This document shows positions 3,001 through 43,000 of a stretch of DNA of 64,000 nucleotides, in pieces. The translations under genes and the position numbers were made by a program. Position 1 is the stretch's first letter. Every line of letters starts with the position of its first letter. The notes under the pieces were generated by a model. That model was not told the origin of the DNA and searched no databases. It saw only the letters and a program-made list of their open reading frames with translations. This stretch comes from Orbicella franksi (lineage: Eukaryota): NCBI GenBank assembly GCA_964199315.1, contig OZ116701.1:868001-932000 (forward strand), in the 5' to 3' direction.

Positions 3001-6000
3001 GCAGACATTCGACATTCATTCAGTTTTTTCGTTGACATGTTAAATCGACCAGTCATGATCAGAGGGCTATCTAAACGAACATGGTCAGTCTTTGTCGCGT
3101 ACGTTCTTAGCAACGTATCATTAGGGACCTTACGCAGAACACGACGGCAACGGCAACGAGAACGTCACCAAACAAAAGGTCTAATGAGCAAAACAATGGC
3201 TGTGCACGTGCATTATAATTCTAGGTACATTTCTTTGCCTTCCTCTGCAAAACAGAAACGTGAAATGACCAAATTCTGCGTTGTCTGGAGAACGTGAACC
3301 ACAACGGCAAATTTTTCGTATTTCTATTTGGAACTGAACGCATTCGTAGCATATTCAGCAGGGGCAAGTTTTAATACCGACAGACACACTGAAAAGTTCC
3401 AAATAAATGCGAAATTTCAAAGTAAAATAGAAAATTTTTACTAGGCGTCGTCCTCGTCGTCGCCGTCTTATATGCGTAAGGTCCCTATTGTGAAATAGAC
3501 GGCACATTCCTGCCTGGCAAATCTGATTCCGAGTTTGCCGTCGACATTCGACGGTTTGGCATATAGTGAGTCATGAAATATAACAGAGTGATATCAGTGT
3601 AACTGTGATAATATCATGGACATGCTCAAAGAAAAATCCACTCACCAAAGCAATGCTACTTGCTGCAATTAGAAACACGATGAACCATTCAAAATACTTG
3701 TGCTCCACAAAGCATTTAACTTTGTGACGTACGCACATCCAAATCACGTGACATGTGGTATCTTCAAACCTACTACAGCAGCTGCGCTGAGTCGGAAAGC
3801 AGTTGTCAACTTCATATTCCCGGGTGTTCAAGGAACAGCAACATACTGTTTTTGGTGAGTCAGGCGGGCAGTCCACTTGCGAGGCTCTCCTAGATATTGA
3901 TCCCACTGTGTCTGTATGGCCATTGCTGACTAAAAAAGAGAAATTCAACTGCAATATGATTATTTCATTCTGTGAGAAAGCATTTGCTTACTTAACTACT
4001 GAAGTCGATTTCAGTTAAATAGTCGAGGAGGTTTCTTTCGTCTTCTCCATCTTTCGCAATTGCGTTCTACGTAAGACCCTCACTAAATCGGCTACCTTGT
4101 TGGCAATTTAAACCAAGTCTGAATTAATTGAAAACTTGTCCAATGCTGATCCTTCAAATAACTGGTTACATTTTTGCAAGTAGCCGCGTCTTGCAATACG
4201 TCTAGCATTGATAATTCTTGTCATCTTAATTTTCCTAATCTTAGCAATCTATGGTGCTATTTGGCTAGTAATTACTTCATTGCTCTTTTTATTTTACAAT
4301 TCAAGAAAAATCAGCTTCAATCTGTTCAAGAAGGGAAGAATCCGTTTTCAAACGAAAGCAAGTTAGTGTGGACAGGGCTTAATCTATACAACTGCAGCAT
4401 GTGAAGTACAGCGTCGTGAGACAGGGAACTAAAGTTTGCAGTCCACAAATCCAGTAGTGTCTGTACTCACAACAGTTCCTTAGAACTCAGTTAAACTGCG
4501 AAGTAAGAGTTCCAGGGACGTCTGGGCTCGAATTGGTCTTATTAGTCATCACAGAAACAATTCTATGAAACTTTACGATGGTCAACTTCTTCACAGCAGA
4601 AGGACGAAAAACACTGCCTATATGTCTGGTATTGGGGGAGACTATCCATAAGTAAATACTCAAACCCTAGTTTTGTGCGTACTTACTTTCCACGACCTCT
4701 TCTGTCGGGGATACACTGTTTTGAGGCCACCTGACTTTGGATTTGATTCTCCTGATGAAACGCGACGCAATCACGACCTTTCTTAGGCGCGTGAAGATTC
4801 GGTTCTTTTTATTTCCTTGCGCGGATGAGGGCGAGGCTTGACCAGCGAATGAGCTTAACAGAAGCGCCAGGAAAAGGTTCAAGATCTGAAACGTGACAGA
4901 ATCGTGAGTATTGTTGCCAACCTATTGGTAAATAACTTCGATGTATTGGAGTTTGTATGGAAATAAATAATTCATTTTGTTTCATTTCGCCTCCGATCCA
5001 AGTTACACTGGCATATCGAAATTGGTGCATGAACAAATATTGGAATGAATTTCATTTTTACTTATGTATAAGTCAGTATGAAAAATCAAAATGACAACGA
5101 AAAATATATTTGTTTACTCACAATAAAGTGTCCTAAAATAAATGCTGGTATGAAGAGTATAATGGAAGCTGGCCCTGCAGCCCTCATGCAGTCCCACAGA
5201 GGTTCAATCCACTCTCCGCAAATAATCCGAAATATTAGCAAAAATGAATGCCAGAAATCTGTGAATCGCCACCGAGGAATTTCGCCGTCGAATTTCTCAG
5301 GCGTGTAGGAAGAACCAAACAGTTGCATGCCCACCACAGCGAAGATATAGATGATGATGGCTAATATGACGGACAGGTTGGCAAGCGCTCCCAGACTGTG
5401 ACCTATTGTTGCCAGAAGGCTTGACATTGTGCTCCAGGACTTGGCGAGCTTTAGAATACGAACCTGGAAAGAACGCCAGGAAAACTAATTGTTATTTTTA
5501 TGAATCAAAATTTGCCAAAAAAGCTGTAAACTTAAAGAAAAGTTACAAAACTGAAAACAAAATTCCCGCTAATCCTGGGATAACCTAATCGGAGTTTGAA
5601 CTAGCCGGCCCTGAGGTAGCTGACTACAGCAAAAACAAAAACTGGAATATTTTGAACCATCTTAAAGGATTTAATTAAAATGCTCACCAGTCTAAATGAT
5701 CTCAATACACTTGTGCCCGTGTTGTCGATGAGGTTTGACAGAGTCAAGACAGTGTCTATGAGACTGATTACCACAACTACGCCATCAAAAATGTTCCAGC
5801 GGCTTTTGATGTAACCACGAAACTTGAAAGCGATCAGCTTGAGAATCATTTCCCCCAGAAAGATAAATGTACAGACCTGCAAAACAGAGCCAAGAATCAG
5901 TTGCAATCCTGATACTAAATGTGAGACTAAACTTTGAAAATAGCTGGAACTTTTGGAACTTGACGGATTGTAAATCATGCGCACCTGGCAAAACATATTA

Positions 6001-12000: not shown

Positions 12001-15000
12001 CATTGTGAGGATGAGTACATCCCATAACATCTTCATGGATGCAAGGAGAGTGTTCACCATCATCTTTAGACCTATAAAACAGCAAACTTAACTTTACTGT
12101 ACCTCCGGGACATAATGACTTTAATTGATGAGCGGTTAATCCCAACATCTGTTTCGATCTGTTTTCATATCGTAACTGAATCTTCCTAGATCACACAACG
12201 AGGAAGCTAAGTAATCGTTTATAATACTTGATAAATTATAAGAATCCTTTAGAATGAGTGTACGAGAAACGACGGTGGGGACGAAAGTAGAGCTAAGAGT
12301 AGACACACATGATATATGCAGGCTCGCGTTTTTAAATGTATCTCGGATGTTCTGGTCATGCATTCTTTCACAAACGATCCCTCTACTATTAAGTTGAGGT
12401 TCATATAGTTGAAATTGATATTAATTTGGGAAATAAAAGAGAAAGGTTTGATGAGCGCTAAAAAGCCAAAAAGAGTAAAGCCAATAGCGACCAAACGGCA
12501 TAATGAAAATGCATTGTAGTTTCATTTTGCTTTCTGTTTCTAAACTGACAATCACAAACCTTTTACGGCTGATATGGTTCTGAGAGCTCGAAACACTCGG
12601 AATGTCCTGATTCCAGAGAGATTTGCCACCCCAGGAGCAAAAGTTACATAGCTTGAGAAAGAAAAGAAATATAACAACGCTGTTTATATCGGCTGTTTAC
12701 GCGTGATCTGTGATTTACAATGAAAAGTTTCCAATCAAAAGAGATTGGAAACGCCCAGTTTCTTCCATTACTGTAAATACTCTTTTCCTTTAGCCATCCT
12801 AGCTTAATAAGAAATAGCACACAAACTGCTGTGACAAACATGACACTGAAACGCATTTTGGAAAACAAAATTCATTAACTTGAGGTTTCGTATGTTTCGA
12901 CATACATCTTCAGAAGTGACCGTTTGGAATAGAAGAAAAAACTAAATTTAAATTAAAGATAAGTAACTAATTAACAATAACAATGACAGAAGCTGAGAAA
13001 AATTTGCATATTAAAAGATGCAAACTAATAAAGATAAAGCTTTTTGCAGCTAACATTATCGTTTAGGGTAGGTTTCAATTCCCTAATTAGTAGAGTCTCC
13101 TTTATCTTGCAATGAGTATCTGACCGACCTTTTGCCAATATATCAAAGTGGTCCCATTTTAAGTTGTGACCAGTTGACGTGACGTGGCCTGCGATAGCAG
13201 ACGCATGACAGCTACTCGTGATCGCTTTAACAGGCAGCAAAACAGACCGAAGAATCCAACCACCACAGTCCTCAAAAAGGAAATAATCTTAGTTCTACCT
13301 TATTTAGAGTTACAAAGGAAAATTGTTACCAAACAGCTGAGGACCTGCATTAATAAATTTTATCATAGTAGATGGTTTGAACCCAGGAGTATCAGTAGTT
13401 CGTATAGTGTGATCGTCCGGGTGAGGGTAGTTATGAAAAGAACTGTTGTTGGTGACTGACGTTTCGACAACCGACAAGAGTCAAGTGAATAGTGTTTGTC
13501 AGTCGATGATCTTATAAGTCTGGTCCGTTGAACGTTATTGGTCAGTTTAGCCAAGATGGTACTGGCTGAAAGACTCGTGTAGAGTTTGTCATCAGTCATT
13601 GGTCGGTTTCGATCCGTCTATTGTTAGTCAAATTGGTCTGTTTTTGGTCCATGTATTGTGAAGTCGGTCTGTTAGAAGTCCGTTTGTCGGTTTCGTTTCC
13701 GTCGTGGATAAGTCGTTTGTAAGGCGCCGGTAGTTGTTGACGTCTGTTAAGAGGCGTTTGTTTTAGGTTAGTGTACCAGATTTTAATATGCAAATTTTTC
13801 TCAGCTTCAGCACATGGTCCACCCCTTAGTTGTTTGGGTTTGATTTTCTTAAGTAACGAGAGCCTGTTAACCTCCAAAGGTTCATGAGAATGTTTAAGCA
13901 CTTGTCTTGTGCCGGATATCCGGCGATATTTGACTCGATATAGGGATTAACAGTAAAATTCGACAAAATAAGAGATCCTACCCAAATATTACAACCACGA
14001 AATCCAGCCAATTCCACGGGTCTCGTAAATACGCATATTTGTGAAGAGCAAATCCTTTGGCAATTATTTTGAGAATCATTTCAACAGTATAAATAGCTGC
14101 AAATACATATCTGTTGAATGAGAAGAGAGAGACAGATAACCTGTTAACACCAGCAACTAGGGTACTATTTCCTTATCTCGGGATATCATCAGTTTTATCA
14201 GACGTCAATTAATACCGGATAGGATGTATGTTATAGACTTCTGGTTCTGTTGGTCTCCTTTTGCTGTATTTGACAACGTTTCCTCTGGTCATTCATGGGT
14301 TCGGTCCAATAAACAAAAATAATAGCCATCTTGCAGTTCGCGTTTTACTGACATTTGTAAAAAGTACGAACACGACGTGACTGTTCTGCACGTTTGCTCC
14401 CCTCCGTTTTTTGACTGGCGAAAAAATTCGCCTCACGTTTGCCCTTCTCGAGAGATGGCGGGAACTGCTTGTCTATCATTTTCACTTATTAAATCAAGCT
14501 AAAGAAATAACCAAGGGAAATCGTTTGGATGTTTGTAATGTTCACTAGCAAAGGGAAGAAAATTATCACTACTTTGATTAGTAATTATTACAAAGTGAAA
14601 TCAATTGGAAATACTCACTCAGGCTCCTCTGGAGGATTTGTCAATGCAAGAAAAACACAGTTTACTAAAATAGTTAGGATAATAAAAATTTCAAAATATC
14701 TGAACAGAGTTAAAGAATTTATCATCAAGAATGAATCAACACGGCATAGAAGTGACCAAACGTAAAGTTCTCAAAATAAAAAGCCTAGAATTTCCCTCTG
14801 AGCGCAAAACCCTTGGATGAAAATAGAGGAAAAGAAAGGATATTTAGCCCTCGGGGGTACTGAAACCTATCATGACCTTCGATTTCAATATGGAATCAGA
14901 TCGCCGTTGCTCTTCTGACGGCACTGGTCAACAAGGTAAAAGGGGGCAGGTTATTAATCATTAAGGAGATATTAAAGTTGAGGAAAGGTGGATGTCAAGT

Positions 15001-40000: not shown

Positions 40001-43000
40001 TGTCCCGTCAAACAGGTTCCACTTGTTTTTGCAGTACTCTTTGACGCCAAATGCGATCAGCTTCAGAATCATTTCCATAATGAATACCACGGTAAATACC
40101 TAAGAAACACATCGAGATAAAGAGTAGGCGAGTCAATAAATACAACAACACTCAAGAAATGTAACCAGACAAGCACCTTGCTACCTTTTTACAGCAGCTA
40201 CTATTGCCAAATCTTAATTTCAACGTCGACTTTCTTAATCTACCTTGATCTTTACCAATTTATGATCACCGGTTCCCTTTTGTCTTATTTCATTCTCGTA
40301 AGTGTTTTTCTACCTGTGTAAACTATTTTTTTTTAATTTTTCAAATTCGATTTCAGGGTGATTTTGCTCATCGCTAAAGATGTAACAACAACAACAACAA
40401 CTACATCCTCTATTTATTCAAGTAGATGGTACAAGAAAAGCGTTGATTGTGCCTTAGCGTTTCTAAGACAAACTAACACAATTCGTTAAACATTATTGTT
40501 CGCTGTCGAGGAAAAGGTTGTTGTTATTCATCGTGGAAGATGCAATAATAAAGTGTATCATCGTTTGTCTCACGATGTAGTCACGTGAGATGTAGATCGC
40601 GACGTTTCGACTGCTTACTGCTAGTCTTCTTCAGGCGATAAGGTCGACTGATTGCACGGTATCATCAATAGGAGGATCGAAATGCACCAATCACAGCCGA
40701 CCTTTGTGATATAAATGACACCGTGCAATCAGTCGACCTTATCGCCTGAAGAAGACTAGCAGTAAGCAGTCGAAACGTCGCGATCTACATCTCAAGTGAC
40801 TACATCGTTAGACAAACGATAATACACTTTATTATTATTGTCCGCGTTTATGGTTAATTGCAGGAGTTTGATAAATATCACTTACCAGATTACAGTACTC
40901 GAGCACCTTAGAAAAAGTCCCGTCCATTTCAAAGTGCTCCAGGGCCATTGCCAACGTATTGAACAGGATACACAAAGTAATGAGGGTCTCAAACACCGAG
41001 GAATTCACGACTCTTGACACGAAGTTTCGTGTACGCCTCCAGCAACTCGGGTTTCCTGGGACCTCGACAGTCACCTCCGTTGGTTCCTCGGGTTCTACGG
41101 GATGTTCAGATTCTTCCGGGTGAGCTGCTATGTAAGCCTCGCGCTCCTCAATTCGTTGTGTATCTTCTTGGTACAATGGTTCTGGGTCCATTTGTCCGTC
41201 AAACGAATAAGTGGAGGCGGATCGTTTGAGTTTGGCAAACGTTTGCGCCTAAAGGAACAAAGACAAGAGTGCACGAGATCAGCTAGCAAGTCAGAGGGAT
41301 GATATTTGATGAGACTTCGTCAAAGGTCAGAATCTGTCGACAGTTAGAAATGTAGTCGATTATCTGTTATCAGTAATGATGTTTGATACGTAAGACTTTC
41401 CGACCATTTGGTTCGTGGTGGTGTATCTAATCCCATCTGAAAACTCGTTGAACCTCATTCAAACCTTCACTCGCAAATATGGCTGAGTTAATAATTGCAA
41501 AACTAACAGTACAACATGAAAGTACTGCTGAATTACTTCCAAAATAATGGCCACAAACTAAGGTATCACCACAGACTTGAGAGTGTGTACGTCTGTAAAT
41601 GAAACCCTGATGCGGTGTGAGCAGTACTTTCATGTGGACTCTTAATTATGCTGTACAAGGTGGTTCTAACTTTTGAGTCTGTGGATGAAACCCTACTATG
41701 TGACGATTTAAATGAAAGCTATGGAGCAGTACTTTCATGTGGAACTGTTTATTATGCTGTACAAGGTGGTTCTAACTTTTAAGTCTGTGGATGAAACCCT
41801 ACGGTGTGACCATTCAAATGAAAGCTATGGAGCAGTACTTTCATGTGGAACTGTTTATTATACTGTACAAGGTGGTTCTAACTTTTAAGTCTGCAGATGA
41901 AACCCTACTGTGAGACGATTTGACTGGAAGATATTGAGCAGCACTTTCAAGTGGTAGTGGAAGTGCTGTTAGTAACGCTACCTAAAACTAAGGTTTCATC
42001 CACAAAATTAACAGTAAGAATAAACTTGCACAGCATAGTAAACAGTACTACGTGAAAATACTGTTGAAAAGCGTTGGTTTTAATGAATACACCCCAGAGT
42101 TTCAAAACCCAACTTAAAGTTAGAACCTCTAAACACGCATTTGCTACGGCCTACATTCGCGTACGGCATTGATTTCTTTAGATAAAGATTTTCTGTACTC
42201 AAATCTGGAGCTTTCAGTGATATAAACAAAATGTCCATGGAGCGAAGAATCTCACTCACCCGAAGAACTTGATCCTGCAATGCTGCAGTTTCTTGTTCGT
42301 ACGAAAGCGACACGACAGCCAAGACAAGATTGATCAAGTAGAAAGGACCCAGGAAGATCACAAACAGGAAATAAAATACGTACCACGGTCCTTTGGTAGC
42401 AATCACCTGCATGGAAAGAATCCACATCAACTGAGAAAACTTGGCCGGAAAGTGAACAAATGAATGTCACTTCGAGAAAGCAAGACAGCCTTAGAACTTA
42501 GTTGATGGCATGGCCTCATATTCAGATACGTATCGCTCGTCACACAGTTCACTAAATCTATACATATCTAAAGTGCGTACCAATTCTGGTAAACAAACAA
42601 TTGCTTATACAGCGACTATTATCTGGGACAATATCCCTACTCATCTTTAAGATCTCAATACCTTCAACTTCTCGAAACATCTGAAACTTTATTTACTGTC
42701 TGAACAACATTCTGAAAACAAGTAATATTCCTATATGCTCTTTATTTCCAATTTTATGTACATATCTCATTCTCTTAATAGCTTTTTTTCTCTTAAATCT
42801 CCATAGAAACATAATAACTGGAGGCTGACTAGAAAACCCTTGGTTACTTCAGTCTCCAGACTCATATAGTACACATTTTTCTTTGTCTTTACATTTCACT
42901 GATATAAAAAAAAACTGTAAATGTTCGACTAAATAAAGTTATTGTTGTTGTTGTTAAAACTCTACTCACGCTGTTGTAAATGCTTTCCCAGTAATCCATT

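Follow-up and report, generated by a model that had tools for sequence, protein, structure and literature searches.

A 5'-truncated pair of Penelope-like element copies with minimal hammerhead motifs in a sodium-channel intron of Orbicella franksi

How does an intron of a coral sodium-channel gene come to hold two opposed hammerhead-ribozyme motifs in the arms of a nearly perfect inverted repeat, and does the gene make any use of them? The locus lies in a 64,000-nt stretch of Orbicella franksi contig OZ116701.1 (the window, to which all coordinates refer), within a Nav-type Ion_trans gene encoded on the minus strand. The original prediction read it as a foldback element, possibly one of a non-autonomous hammerhead-MITE family. 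We posit instead that the structure at 40504–40836 very probably arose when a high-copy Penelope-like element (PLE) integrated in a single event, leaving a dead and passive insertion that carries the element's own minimal hammerheads (min-HHRs).

An inverted repeat in a normally spliced intron

The composite falls inside a single spliced intron of 786 nt (40097–40882, minus strand, GT..AG), whose spliced joint 40096>40883 is present in the raw reads of X21 and in contigs of X1 and X4. The flanking exons match the Pfam profile Ion_trans at profile positions 2–39 and 42–102. The insertion ends at 40836, 46 nt from the intron donor and close to the roughly 50 nt first given, and RNA reads indicate normal splicing of this intron. 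The X1 and X4 contigs, which derive from other coral samples and show 12–13 differences over 463 nt, continue from intron sequence through the first 29 nt of the insertion, which is thus not private to this assembly.

A repeat search delimited inverted repeats of 127 nt at 40544–40670 and 40710–40836 (95% complementary, 39 nt apart), of which the homologous arm part comprises 122 nt (40544–40665 versus 40715–40836). Four mismatches separate these arms (40719/40661, 40795/40585, 40809/40571 and 40821/40559), none of them inside the hammerhead motif, and the resulting 96.7% identity bears out the earlier estimate of two 122-bp arms about 97% identical. The whole composite is predicted to fold as a hairpin of −232 to −235 kcal/mol (z = −33).

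Two hammerhead motifs of the minimal, helix-III-less type

An identical 44-nt minimal type I hammerhead motif occurs on each strand. The plus-strand copy (40741–40784) is antisense to the channel gene and has its predicted cut at 40779|40780; the minus-strand copy (40639–40596) is sense in the channel pre-mRNA, and the cut predicted there between 40601 and 40600 was reproduced. The motif consists of helix I (AUCGC/GCGAU), CUGAAGA, an extra A, a 6-bp helix II with one bulge, GAAA, CG and UC. As had been claimed, the core is intact in each arm, both copies holding the catalytic positions C3 U4 G5 A6 N7 G8 A9 / G12 A13 A14 / A15.1-U16.1 / H17 in the form CUGAAGA ... GAAA-CG-UC. The lowest-energy fold of the 44-mer (−11.0 kcal/mol) comprises helix I and helix II with an open core.

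These features match the min-HHRs surveyed in PLEs of metazoans, including cnidarians, by Cervera & de la Pena (2014; PMC4209133). Shared are the type I topology, the core CUGANGA ... GAAA ... UH with its G10.1-C11.1 pair, a long helix II (6 bp and a bulge here) beside a short helix I (5 bp), and the pseudo-LTR location. Also shared are the unpaired nucleotide between A9 and G10.1 and the palindromic 15.2-16.2 without loop 3, both listed in that survey. The palindrome is ACGU at this locus and ACGU or AGCU in other families, while the unpaired nucleotide is A at this locus and A or U in most of the matches listed, the search pattern having allowed any base at this position. The original identification of the motif as the minimal, helix-III-less, dimer-dependent hammerhead known from PLEs, with the extra base after A9 as a known variant, agrees with the same survey. 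A single min-HHR is reported to be inactive as a monomer (PMC4209133), and according to the literature hammerheads without a helix III loop cleave only as dimers and weakly; for dimer cleavage by min-HHRs, a review (PMC6765202) cites Lunse, Weinberg & Breaker (2017). Modelling two 44-mers with RNAcofold returned only an uninformative full duplex, the intermolecular helix III being a pseudoknot that crosses both closed helices I.

Rfam covariance models gave no match to Hammerhead_1 or related hammerhead families at E<=10, whether 5 kb or 321 nt were searched. This miss is expected because the models include the helix III hairpin, which the min-HHR variant lacks, and the 2014 survey likewise required a dedicated descriptor (PMC4209133). 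The one strong Rfam row, tsr1 with 44.9 bits where the gathering score is 235, was rejected as an artefact of the long hairpin. In poly(A) RNA-seq of X23, with a family depth of ~30–80, read ends were not enriched at either predicted cut (40779|40780, 40601|40600), so that the 5' ends looked for at 40600 did not pile up in libraries that rarely capture 5'-OH or cyclic-phosphate ends. The same absence of read ends at a hammerhead cut has been reported for Anolis (PMC11167929).

Both arms derive from the 3' end of a Penelope-like element

Both arms correspond to the 3' end of a 2.7-kb PLE with one ORF, which combines a reverse transcriptase (RT) with a GIY-YIG endonuclease at the C-terminus. The ORF at locus L033, which serves as the reference unit, has 899 codons, scores 30.1 bits against RVT_1 (cutoff 29.6) and 24.2 bits against GIY-YIG (cutoff 22.6), and contains a DKG motif. 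Judged by eye, it also shows a CxC...HxH pattern in the endonuclease and no linker CxxC finger; these motifs would place the family nearer to Penelope/Poseidon than to the cnidarian 'Hydra' clade. The hammerhead follows the ORF stop at a distance of 31 nt, and the next ATG falls within the 'tail' described below. The putative ribozyme is the PLE's own motif, situated between the ORF stop and the start codon of the next unit. A locus with a partial upstream copy followed by a full-length one (L031) displays the corresponding pseudo-LTR, or partial tandem, arrangement. Upstream of the plus-oriented copy, family similarity continues for at least 1.5 kb in many loci, with varying 5' truncation points. 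A tblastn search of the window with the PLE ORF found no further coding fragment of this family.

The family is abundant. A search for the exact 34-nt ribozyme recovered 485 genomic copies and none in a reversed control, which places the motif far above chance, and the arm repeat has at least 1,111 first-look genomic candidates at ~98% identity, both counts being lower bounds. The proportion of exact 34-mers among the candidates is about that expected from 2% neutral divergence (0.98^34 = 0.50), in keeping with dead copies. The proposed comparison of core and flank conservation among copies is therefore uninformative within this young family. The comparison across families is informative and supports a ribozyme. 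A general hammerhead descriptor, whose pattern omitted helices I and II except for the 10.1-11.1 pair, returned 2,735 genome matches versus 44 in the control. Several PLE families, differing by compensatory changes in the helices, are represented among these matches, and in the other families the hammerhead lies downstream of PLE ORFs just 27–42% identical to the L033-type ORF. Across families the core is constant, and covariation is seen in helix I (AUCGC/GCGAU, AUUCC/GGAAU, UGACU/AGUCA), in helix II, whose sequences are unrelated yet paired, and in the helix III palindrome. Helix I was not found in two of the families (GGTC... and GGCC...).

Two truncated copies, probably joined in one integration event

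The 333-bp structure resolves into two unequal PLE copies whose truncated 5' ends abut at 40665|40666 and whose 3' ends point outward. The left copy (40504–40665, minus strand, 162 nt with tail) consists of a 3' UTR/pseudo-LTR at 40544–40665 (unit 2548–2669; 97.5% to L033 by BLAST), 5'-truncated at 40665, and a 40-nt tail at 40504–40543 that is the start of the next unit. This tail aligns to positions 2670–2709 of the L033 unit and includes the ORF start codon (40531–40529, minus strand) in an ATG context matching the L033 ORF. The right copy (40666–40836, plus strand, 171 nt with ORF end) begins with the last 14 RT/GIY-YIG codons at 40666–40709 (unit 2499–2542, TGA at 40707–40709), 5'-truncated at 40666. 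When translated, they correspond to the C-terminal end of the L033 ORF, and RNA reads from other copies continue upstream of 40666 into ORF sequence. Its 3' UTR/pseudo-LTR (40710–40836, 98.8% to the unit) ends at unit position 2669 without a tail, family similarity stopping at 40835/40836. A 9-nt target-site duplication with one mismatch flanks the whole composite, with ATTGTTCGC on the left (40495–40503) and ATTGTCCGC on the right (40837–40845); the match is 8/9, or 10/11 with an ambiguous ATT overlap. Abutting copies within a single flanking duplication indicate one integration event.

Twelve other head-to-head composites were present in the fetched loci (13 with this one), 11 of which have a clear duplication of their own of ~8–13 bp. 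The tail is one-sided in most composites and two-sided in L011 and L033. When the first 100 descriptor matches on contig 1 were inspected by eye, same-family neighbour pairs less than 6 kb apart comprised 18 in minus-then-plus order, one plus-then-minus and one tandem. Published in-vitro work on an Anolis PLE suggests how such pairs could arise: the PLE endonuclease would cut both target strands, both target 3' ends would prime reverse transcription on element RNA, and the two short cDNAs would then be joined. Inner junctions appear to cluster at unit positions ~2498–2505 and 2529–2538, just upstream of the ribozyme; it is conceivable, though unlikely, that a structured RNA halts the reverse transcriptase there. 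At the present locus the insertion is very probably a passive passenger and encodes no protein, and in the channel pre-mRNA its sole sense hammerhead would be paired with a perfect antisense in a predicted hairpin of about −232 kcal/mol.

Alternative origins and possible host function

The near-perfect inverted arms, short spacer, flanking duplication and small size of the composite, together with the existence of a very similar composite at L064, would also fit a foldback or MITE family, non-autonomous and with long inverted repeats at its ends, that moved as a unit with hammerheads in its arms. This reading is hardly credible and already largely refuted, since each arm is co-linear with an autonomous RT/GIY-YIG retrotransposon at its 3' end, of which the arms are 5'-truncated remnants joined in one integration event, the two copies are unequal (one with tail, the other with ORF end), and the inner junction is different in every composite. 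A query spanning the junction recovered the locus itself and L064 alone, and L064 is a mirror image with its tail on the opposite side, another junction and unrelated flanks. The composite has thus not multiplied as a unit, L064 being an independent event. Nor does a retrozyme-type origin, in which non-autonomous hammerhead repeats lie in tandem and are expressed as small circular RNAs, have more than a negligible probability. The minimal type I hammerhead is shared with animal non-LTR retrozymes, which have been proposed to derive from PLE pseudo-LTRs (bioRxiv 10.64898/2026.07.22.740005). However, retrozymes are direct tandem repeats giving circular RNAs, whereas the copies here form an inverted pair without tandem. 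No transcript contains two sense ribozymes, and hence there is no unit-length RNA to excise or circularise; the sequence is also co-linear with an autonomous PLE, ORF end and start included.

A different possibility is that the host has exapted the element to control the sodium-channel transcript, either through a ribozyme that is regulated or 'self-silenced' or through a supply of double-stranded RNA (ADAR, siRNA). Such a role draws on the presence in the pre-mRNA of a sense hammerhead and the predicted −232 kcal/mol hairpin within 46 nt of the splice donor, and on the X1 and X4 contigs, which reach into the insertion in other coral samples. The original claim of sequestration is also consistent with our analysis, in that the channel pre-mRNA contains the minus-strand hammerhead in sense orientation and the predicted hairpin would sequester it. 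Exaptation is nevertheless very improbable, given that the locus is one of hundreds of insertions of identical type, a lone min-HHR is reported to be inactive as a monomer (PMC4209133), the intron is spliced normally, and the arms and target-site duplication have gathered substitutions as neutral DNA does. Reads on the arms show alternative letters at 40537, 40559, 40585, 40719 and 40809, indicating that they derive from other copies; X21 yielded no arm reads. No arm read carries locus-private variants and the listed arm changes are not of the A>G type. We found nothing in support of a self-silenced ribozyme with a host function.

Relation to known elements and significance

The passive PLE insertion preferred here matches what has already been published on architecture, tail, min-HHR and abundance (PMC4209133, PMC8557442, PMC11167929, PMC6765202). 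It does not differ in kind from the PLE min-HHRs of the 2014 survey, which also reports per-genome copy numbers in the hundreds to thousands, most copies being solitary, and mentions 'dual min-HHRs ... (~100-700 bp) but in opposite strands' (PMC4209133); the present case concerns one family in one coral genome, known from sequence. With other endonuclease-positive PLEs (Craig et al. 2021, PMC8557442; Mob DNA 2024, PMC11167929) it shares strong 5' truncation, an abutting inverted and 5'-truncated partner that makes inverted repeats, a 30–40-bp tail at one end only, and an RT and C-terminal GIY-YIG ORF with a hammerhead in the pseudo-LTR. It differs from the canonical insertions in that both copies are very short (162 and 171 nt), leaving the foldback alone.

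The geometry also resembles that of another class of retrotransposon. In LINE-1 twin priming both 3' ends of the target site prime cDNA, producing an inverted, 5'-truncated composite inside one duplication. This outcome is shared with the PLE pair, with the difference that LINE-1 inverts or deletes a single element, whereas here a pair has both 3' ends outward, and that PLEs rely on a GIY-YIG endonuclease and initiate internally, which yields the tail.

Genome annotation should mask the locus as a PLE fragment and not present it as a novel sodium-channel ribozyme device; beyond that it has little importance. It is a clean documented example of the PLE insertion signature of inverted truncated partner, one-sided tail and one duplication, and the descriptor matches show the abundance of min-HHRs in a coral genome. 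Genome scans keep rediscovering 'foldback ribozymes' because Rfam hammerhead models miss the min-HHR variant. About one third of the hammerhead motifs among the matches listed sit in minus-then-plus pairs. It is conceivable, if unlikely, that frequent short head-to-head PLE insertions seed near-perfect hairpins in transcribed introns and UTRs and so provide a genome-wide source of double-stranded RNA and siRNA. If so, these RNAs could feed back on PLE activity or on host transcripts, and the hammerhead would be irrelevant to that effect.

Structure and parent element

The structure at 40504–40836 is a dead-on-arrival, head-to-head insertion of a Penelope-like element (PLE), a kind already in the literature. 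A repeat search of the window returned inverted arms of 127 nt (40544–40670 and 40710–40836; 95% complementary) with a 39-nt spacer. Comparison with other copies placed their homologous core at 122 nt (40544–40665 versus 40715–40836) with four mismatches (96.7% identity), in agreement with the original prediction of two 122-bp arms about 97% identical. Either strand of the whole composite is predicted to form a single hairpin (−232 to −235 kcal/mol, z about −33). This long hairpin explains a match of the Rfam model tsr1 to 40530–40850 (E = 1.4e-10; 44.9 bits against a gathering score of 235), which was discarded as a false lead.

The arm is repetitive: a first-look search gave at least 1,111 candidates across the 497 Mb of the genome, most of them with about 98% identity. 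In BLAST of fetched loci, the boundaries of the foldback were not those of the other copies, which match 40666–40836 and, without a change of orientation, the reverse complement of 40504–40665. The window thus contains two pieces of the same unit that overlap in sequence and meet between 40665 and 40666. Upstream of the plus-oriented piece, similarity among loci extends for at least 1.5 kb and stops at many different points on the 5' side. In the full-length reference locus L033 the unit, about 2.7 kb long, contains an uninterrupted 899-codon frame that ends inside it. Scanned as two pieces, this ORF matched RVT_1 (30.1 bits, cutoff 29.6) and GIY-YIG (24.2 bits, cutoff 22.6); canonical PLEs are defined by one ORF that encodes a reverse transcriptase and, C-terminal to it, a GIY-YIG endonuclease (PMC4209133, PMC8557442). 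Motifs read in the ORF (DKG present, endonuclease CxC...HxH, linker CxxC finger absent) suggest that the family is probably Penelope/Poseidon-like. By unit comparison, the plus strand of the window retains the last 14 codons and stop of the ORF (40666–40709, TGA at 40707–40709) and a 3' UTR or pseudo-LTR with a hammerhead (40710–40836), and the minus strand carries a 40-nt extension, or tail (40504–40543), with the next unit's ATG (40531–40529). The ribozyme falls within the roughly 135 nt separating the stop from the next start codon, as it likewise does in published PLE pseudo-LTRs.

Hammerhead motifs

Each arm carries the same 44-nt hammerhead motif, identical in sequence, at 40741–40784 on the plus strand (predicted cut between 40779 and 40780) and at 40639–40596 on the minus strand, where we obtained the cut site originally predicted, between 40601 and 40600. 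In order, the motif comprises helix I (AUCGC/GCGAU), CUGAAGA, a single additional A, helix II (6 bp, interrupted by one bulged A and closed by a 5-nt loop), GAAA, CG and UC. The minimum-energy structure of the isolated 44-mer has helices I and II round an open core (−11.0 kcal/mol). Rfam hammerhead models gave no match at the locus even at E ≤ 10, so that this formal test failed, which we attribute to the motif's lack of a hairpin at helix III; a dedicated descriptor was likewise required in the 2014 study of minimal hammerhead ribozymes (min-HHRs; PMC4209133).

The coral motif and the min-HHR of Cervera and de la Peña share a long helix II with an unpaired base at its 5' end, a short helix I and a palindromic 15.2–16.2. 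Agreement in every listed feature bears out the earlier assignment to the minimal, dimer-dependent hammerheads of PLEs. Min-HHRs occur in cnidarians, including 'dual min-HHRs ... in opposite strands', and had no activity singly and weak activity as dimers (PMC4209133); later work describes cleavage as dimers (as cited in PMC6765202) and protein-assisted hammerhead cleavage (PMC11167929).

Across the genome, the exact 34-nt motif occurred 485 times versus 0 in a reversed control, and a descriptor limited to three requirements (the core, the 10.1–11.1 pair and a palindromic 15.2–16.2), with helix I outside the pattern, found 2,735 sites versus 44. These matches form several families whose helix II sequences are unrelated yet paired. 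Helix I is quite different in three families, each with 5 bp (AUCGC/GCGAU, AUUCC/GGAAU and UGACU/AGUCA), and was not seen in two of the descriptor-match families; at helix III, either ACGU or AGCU forms the palindrome, and most of the matches listed have A or U as the additional nucleotide after A9. The other families lie downstream of PLE ORFs with just 27–42% protein identity to the L033-type ORF. Ribozyme core and pairing have persisted while PLE proteins diverged deeply, and it is this comparison across families that makes the conservation test informative. In the young family itself, 485 intact 34-mers among at least 1,111 candidates is the expectation of neutral decay at 2%, a share expected of dead copies that says nothing either way. 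Aside from Rfam, the evidence for the predicted hammerheads is strong.

A second min-HHR-like motif, of a different family, was observed at 12882–12913 on the minus strand (context 12700–13100), with CUGAAGA, an additional U, a fully paired 6-bp helix II and GAAA; its helix III, ACCU, is non-palindromic, probably through a G16.2-to-C change. Upstream of the motif on that strand lies a reading frame whose C-terminus resembles the end of a GIY-YIG domain, and intact relatives are present elsewhere in the genome. The region is probably another decayed PLE fragment.

Origin of the composite

The original prediction of a foldback element or hammerhead-MITE family implied a mobile foldback, which we reject: the arms are PLE 3' ends, and their junction does not recur. 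An 80-nt query spanning the inner junction recovered, genome-wide, this locus and a single further full-length match (L064). The latter has its tail on the opposite side, a different junction and unrelated flanks, and is an independent, mirror-image short composite of the same PLE family (L064:543–719). Its plus-strand ribozyme reads CCGAAGA for CUGAAGA (U4 to C), leaving one hammerhead intact and the other disabled.

Head-to-head pairs are instead the rule among loci aligned to the L033 unit: a minus copy meets a plus copy at their truncated 5' ends, to within 0–9 bp, with 3' ends outward. Thirteen composites, the window's included, were fully resolved, and most have one outer end at unit position ~2669 and the other with the 40-nt tail to ~2709 (tail at both ends in L011 and L033). 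A clear direct duplication of their own, about 8–13 bp long, flanks 11 of the 12 others. The flanks of L011 share a weak 6-bp match only, and the clear exception is L033, where the 20-nt flanks (L033:1535–1554 and 5174–5193) are perfect reverse complements; that locus is a full-length-plus-truncated composite nested in either a larger palindrome or an artefact of assembly. The window composite is bounded by the target-site duplication ATTGT(T/C)CGC (40495–40503 and 40837–40845; 8/9 matching), and one duplication enclosing both arms implies a single integration event. The insertion is aged, as the arms differ at 4/122 positions and the duplication has one mismatch. Among the first 100 descriptor matches on contig 1, counted by eye, 18 same-family pairs within 6 kb ran minus-then-plus, one plus-then-minus and one in tandem.

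The composites have the architecture of the published PLE insertion signature. For an Anolis PLE, the purified protein cuts both strands of the target and extends them, and its reverse transcription starts at two internal sites, which bound the tail (PMC11167929). Given this activity and the signature, the most likely mechanism in the coral family is that both target strands would prime reverse transcription and the two short cDNAs would then be joined head to head. Of the original interpretation, the ribozyme class stands, whereas the proposed nature of the element and the suggested functions (self-silenced ribozyme, dsRNA/ADAR substrate) are not supported.

In a small sample, inner junctions of short composites seem clustered at unit ~2498–2505 (window, L006, L021, L064) and at ~2529–2538 (L011, L014, L016, L023, L026, L064), both 40–75 nt upstream of the hammerhead (unit, L033:1555–4270, minus strand).

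Host intron and transcription

Spliced joints 40096>40883 in raw stranded reads (library X21) and in contigs of two coral RNA samples (X1, X4), CT..AC on the plus strand and GT..AG on the minus, define a 786-nt intron of the minus-strand gene (40097–40882). The exons on either side match consecutive Pfam Ion_trans profile positions (2–39 and 42–102), and the donor lies 46 nt beyond the end of the insertion, in agreement with the original prediction of about 50 nt for this Nav-type channel gene. Expression of the channel gene is seen at low read depth, with this intron spliced out normally. The X1 and X4 contigs carry 12–13 differences in 463 intron positions and extend 29 nt into the insertion, which is thus not private to the assembly.

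In the poly(A) library X23 both strands of the arms had about 30–80x coverage, by reads that almost all carry the alternative letter at 40537, 40559, 40585, 40719 and 40809. These reads also extend past 40666 with ORF sequence, or past 40504 and 40835 with flanks that vary, indicating that they derive from other copies. Read starts and ends were not reported to pile up at any place, in libraries whose poly(A) selection suits cleavage ends poorly; the changes listed on the arms were not of A>G type, and no arm read had the private variants of the locus.

The next intron contains a short repeat (41724–41925) with summed contig depth up to ~66,000 in X1 and 20–50x in poly(A) raw reads, which continue into other sequences. 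It is an abundant expressed repeat, and small ORFs around it have in common the recurring peptide pattern ...QYFHV.LF.ML.K..LT...VDETL...
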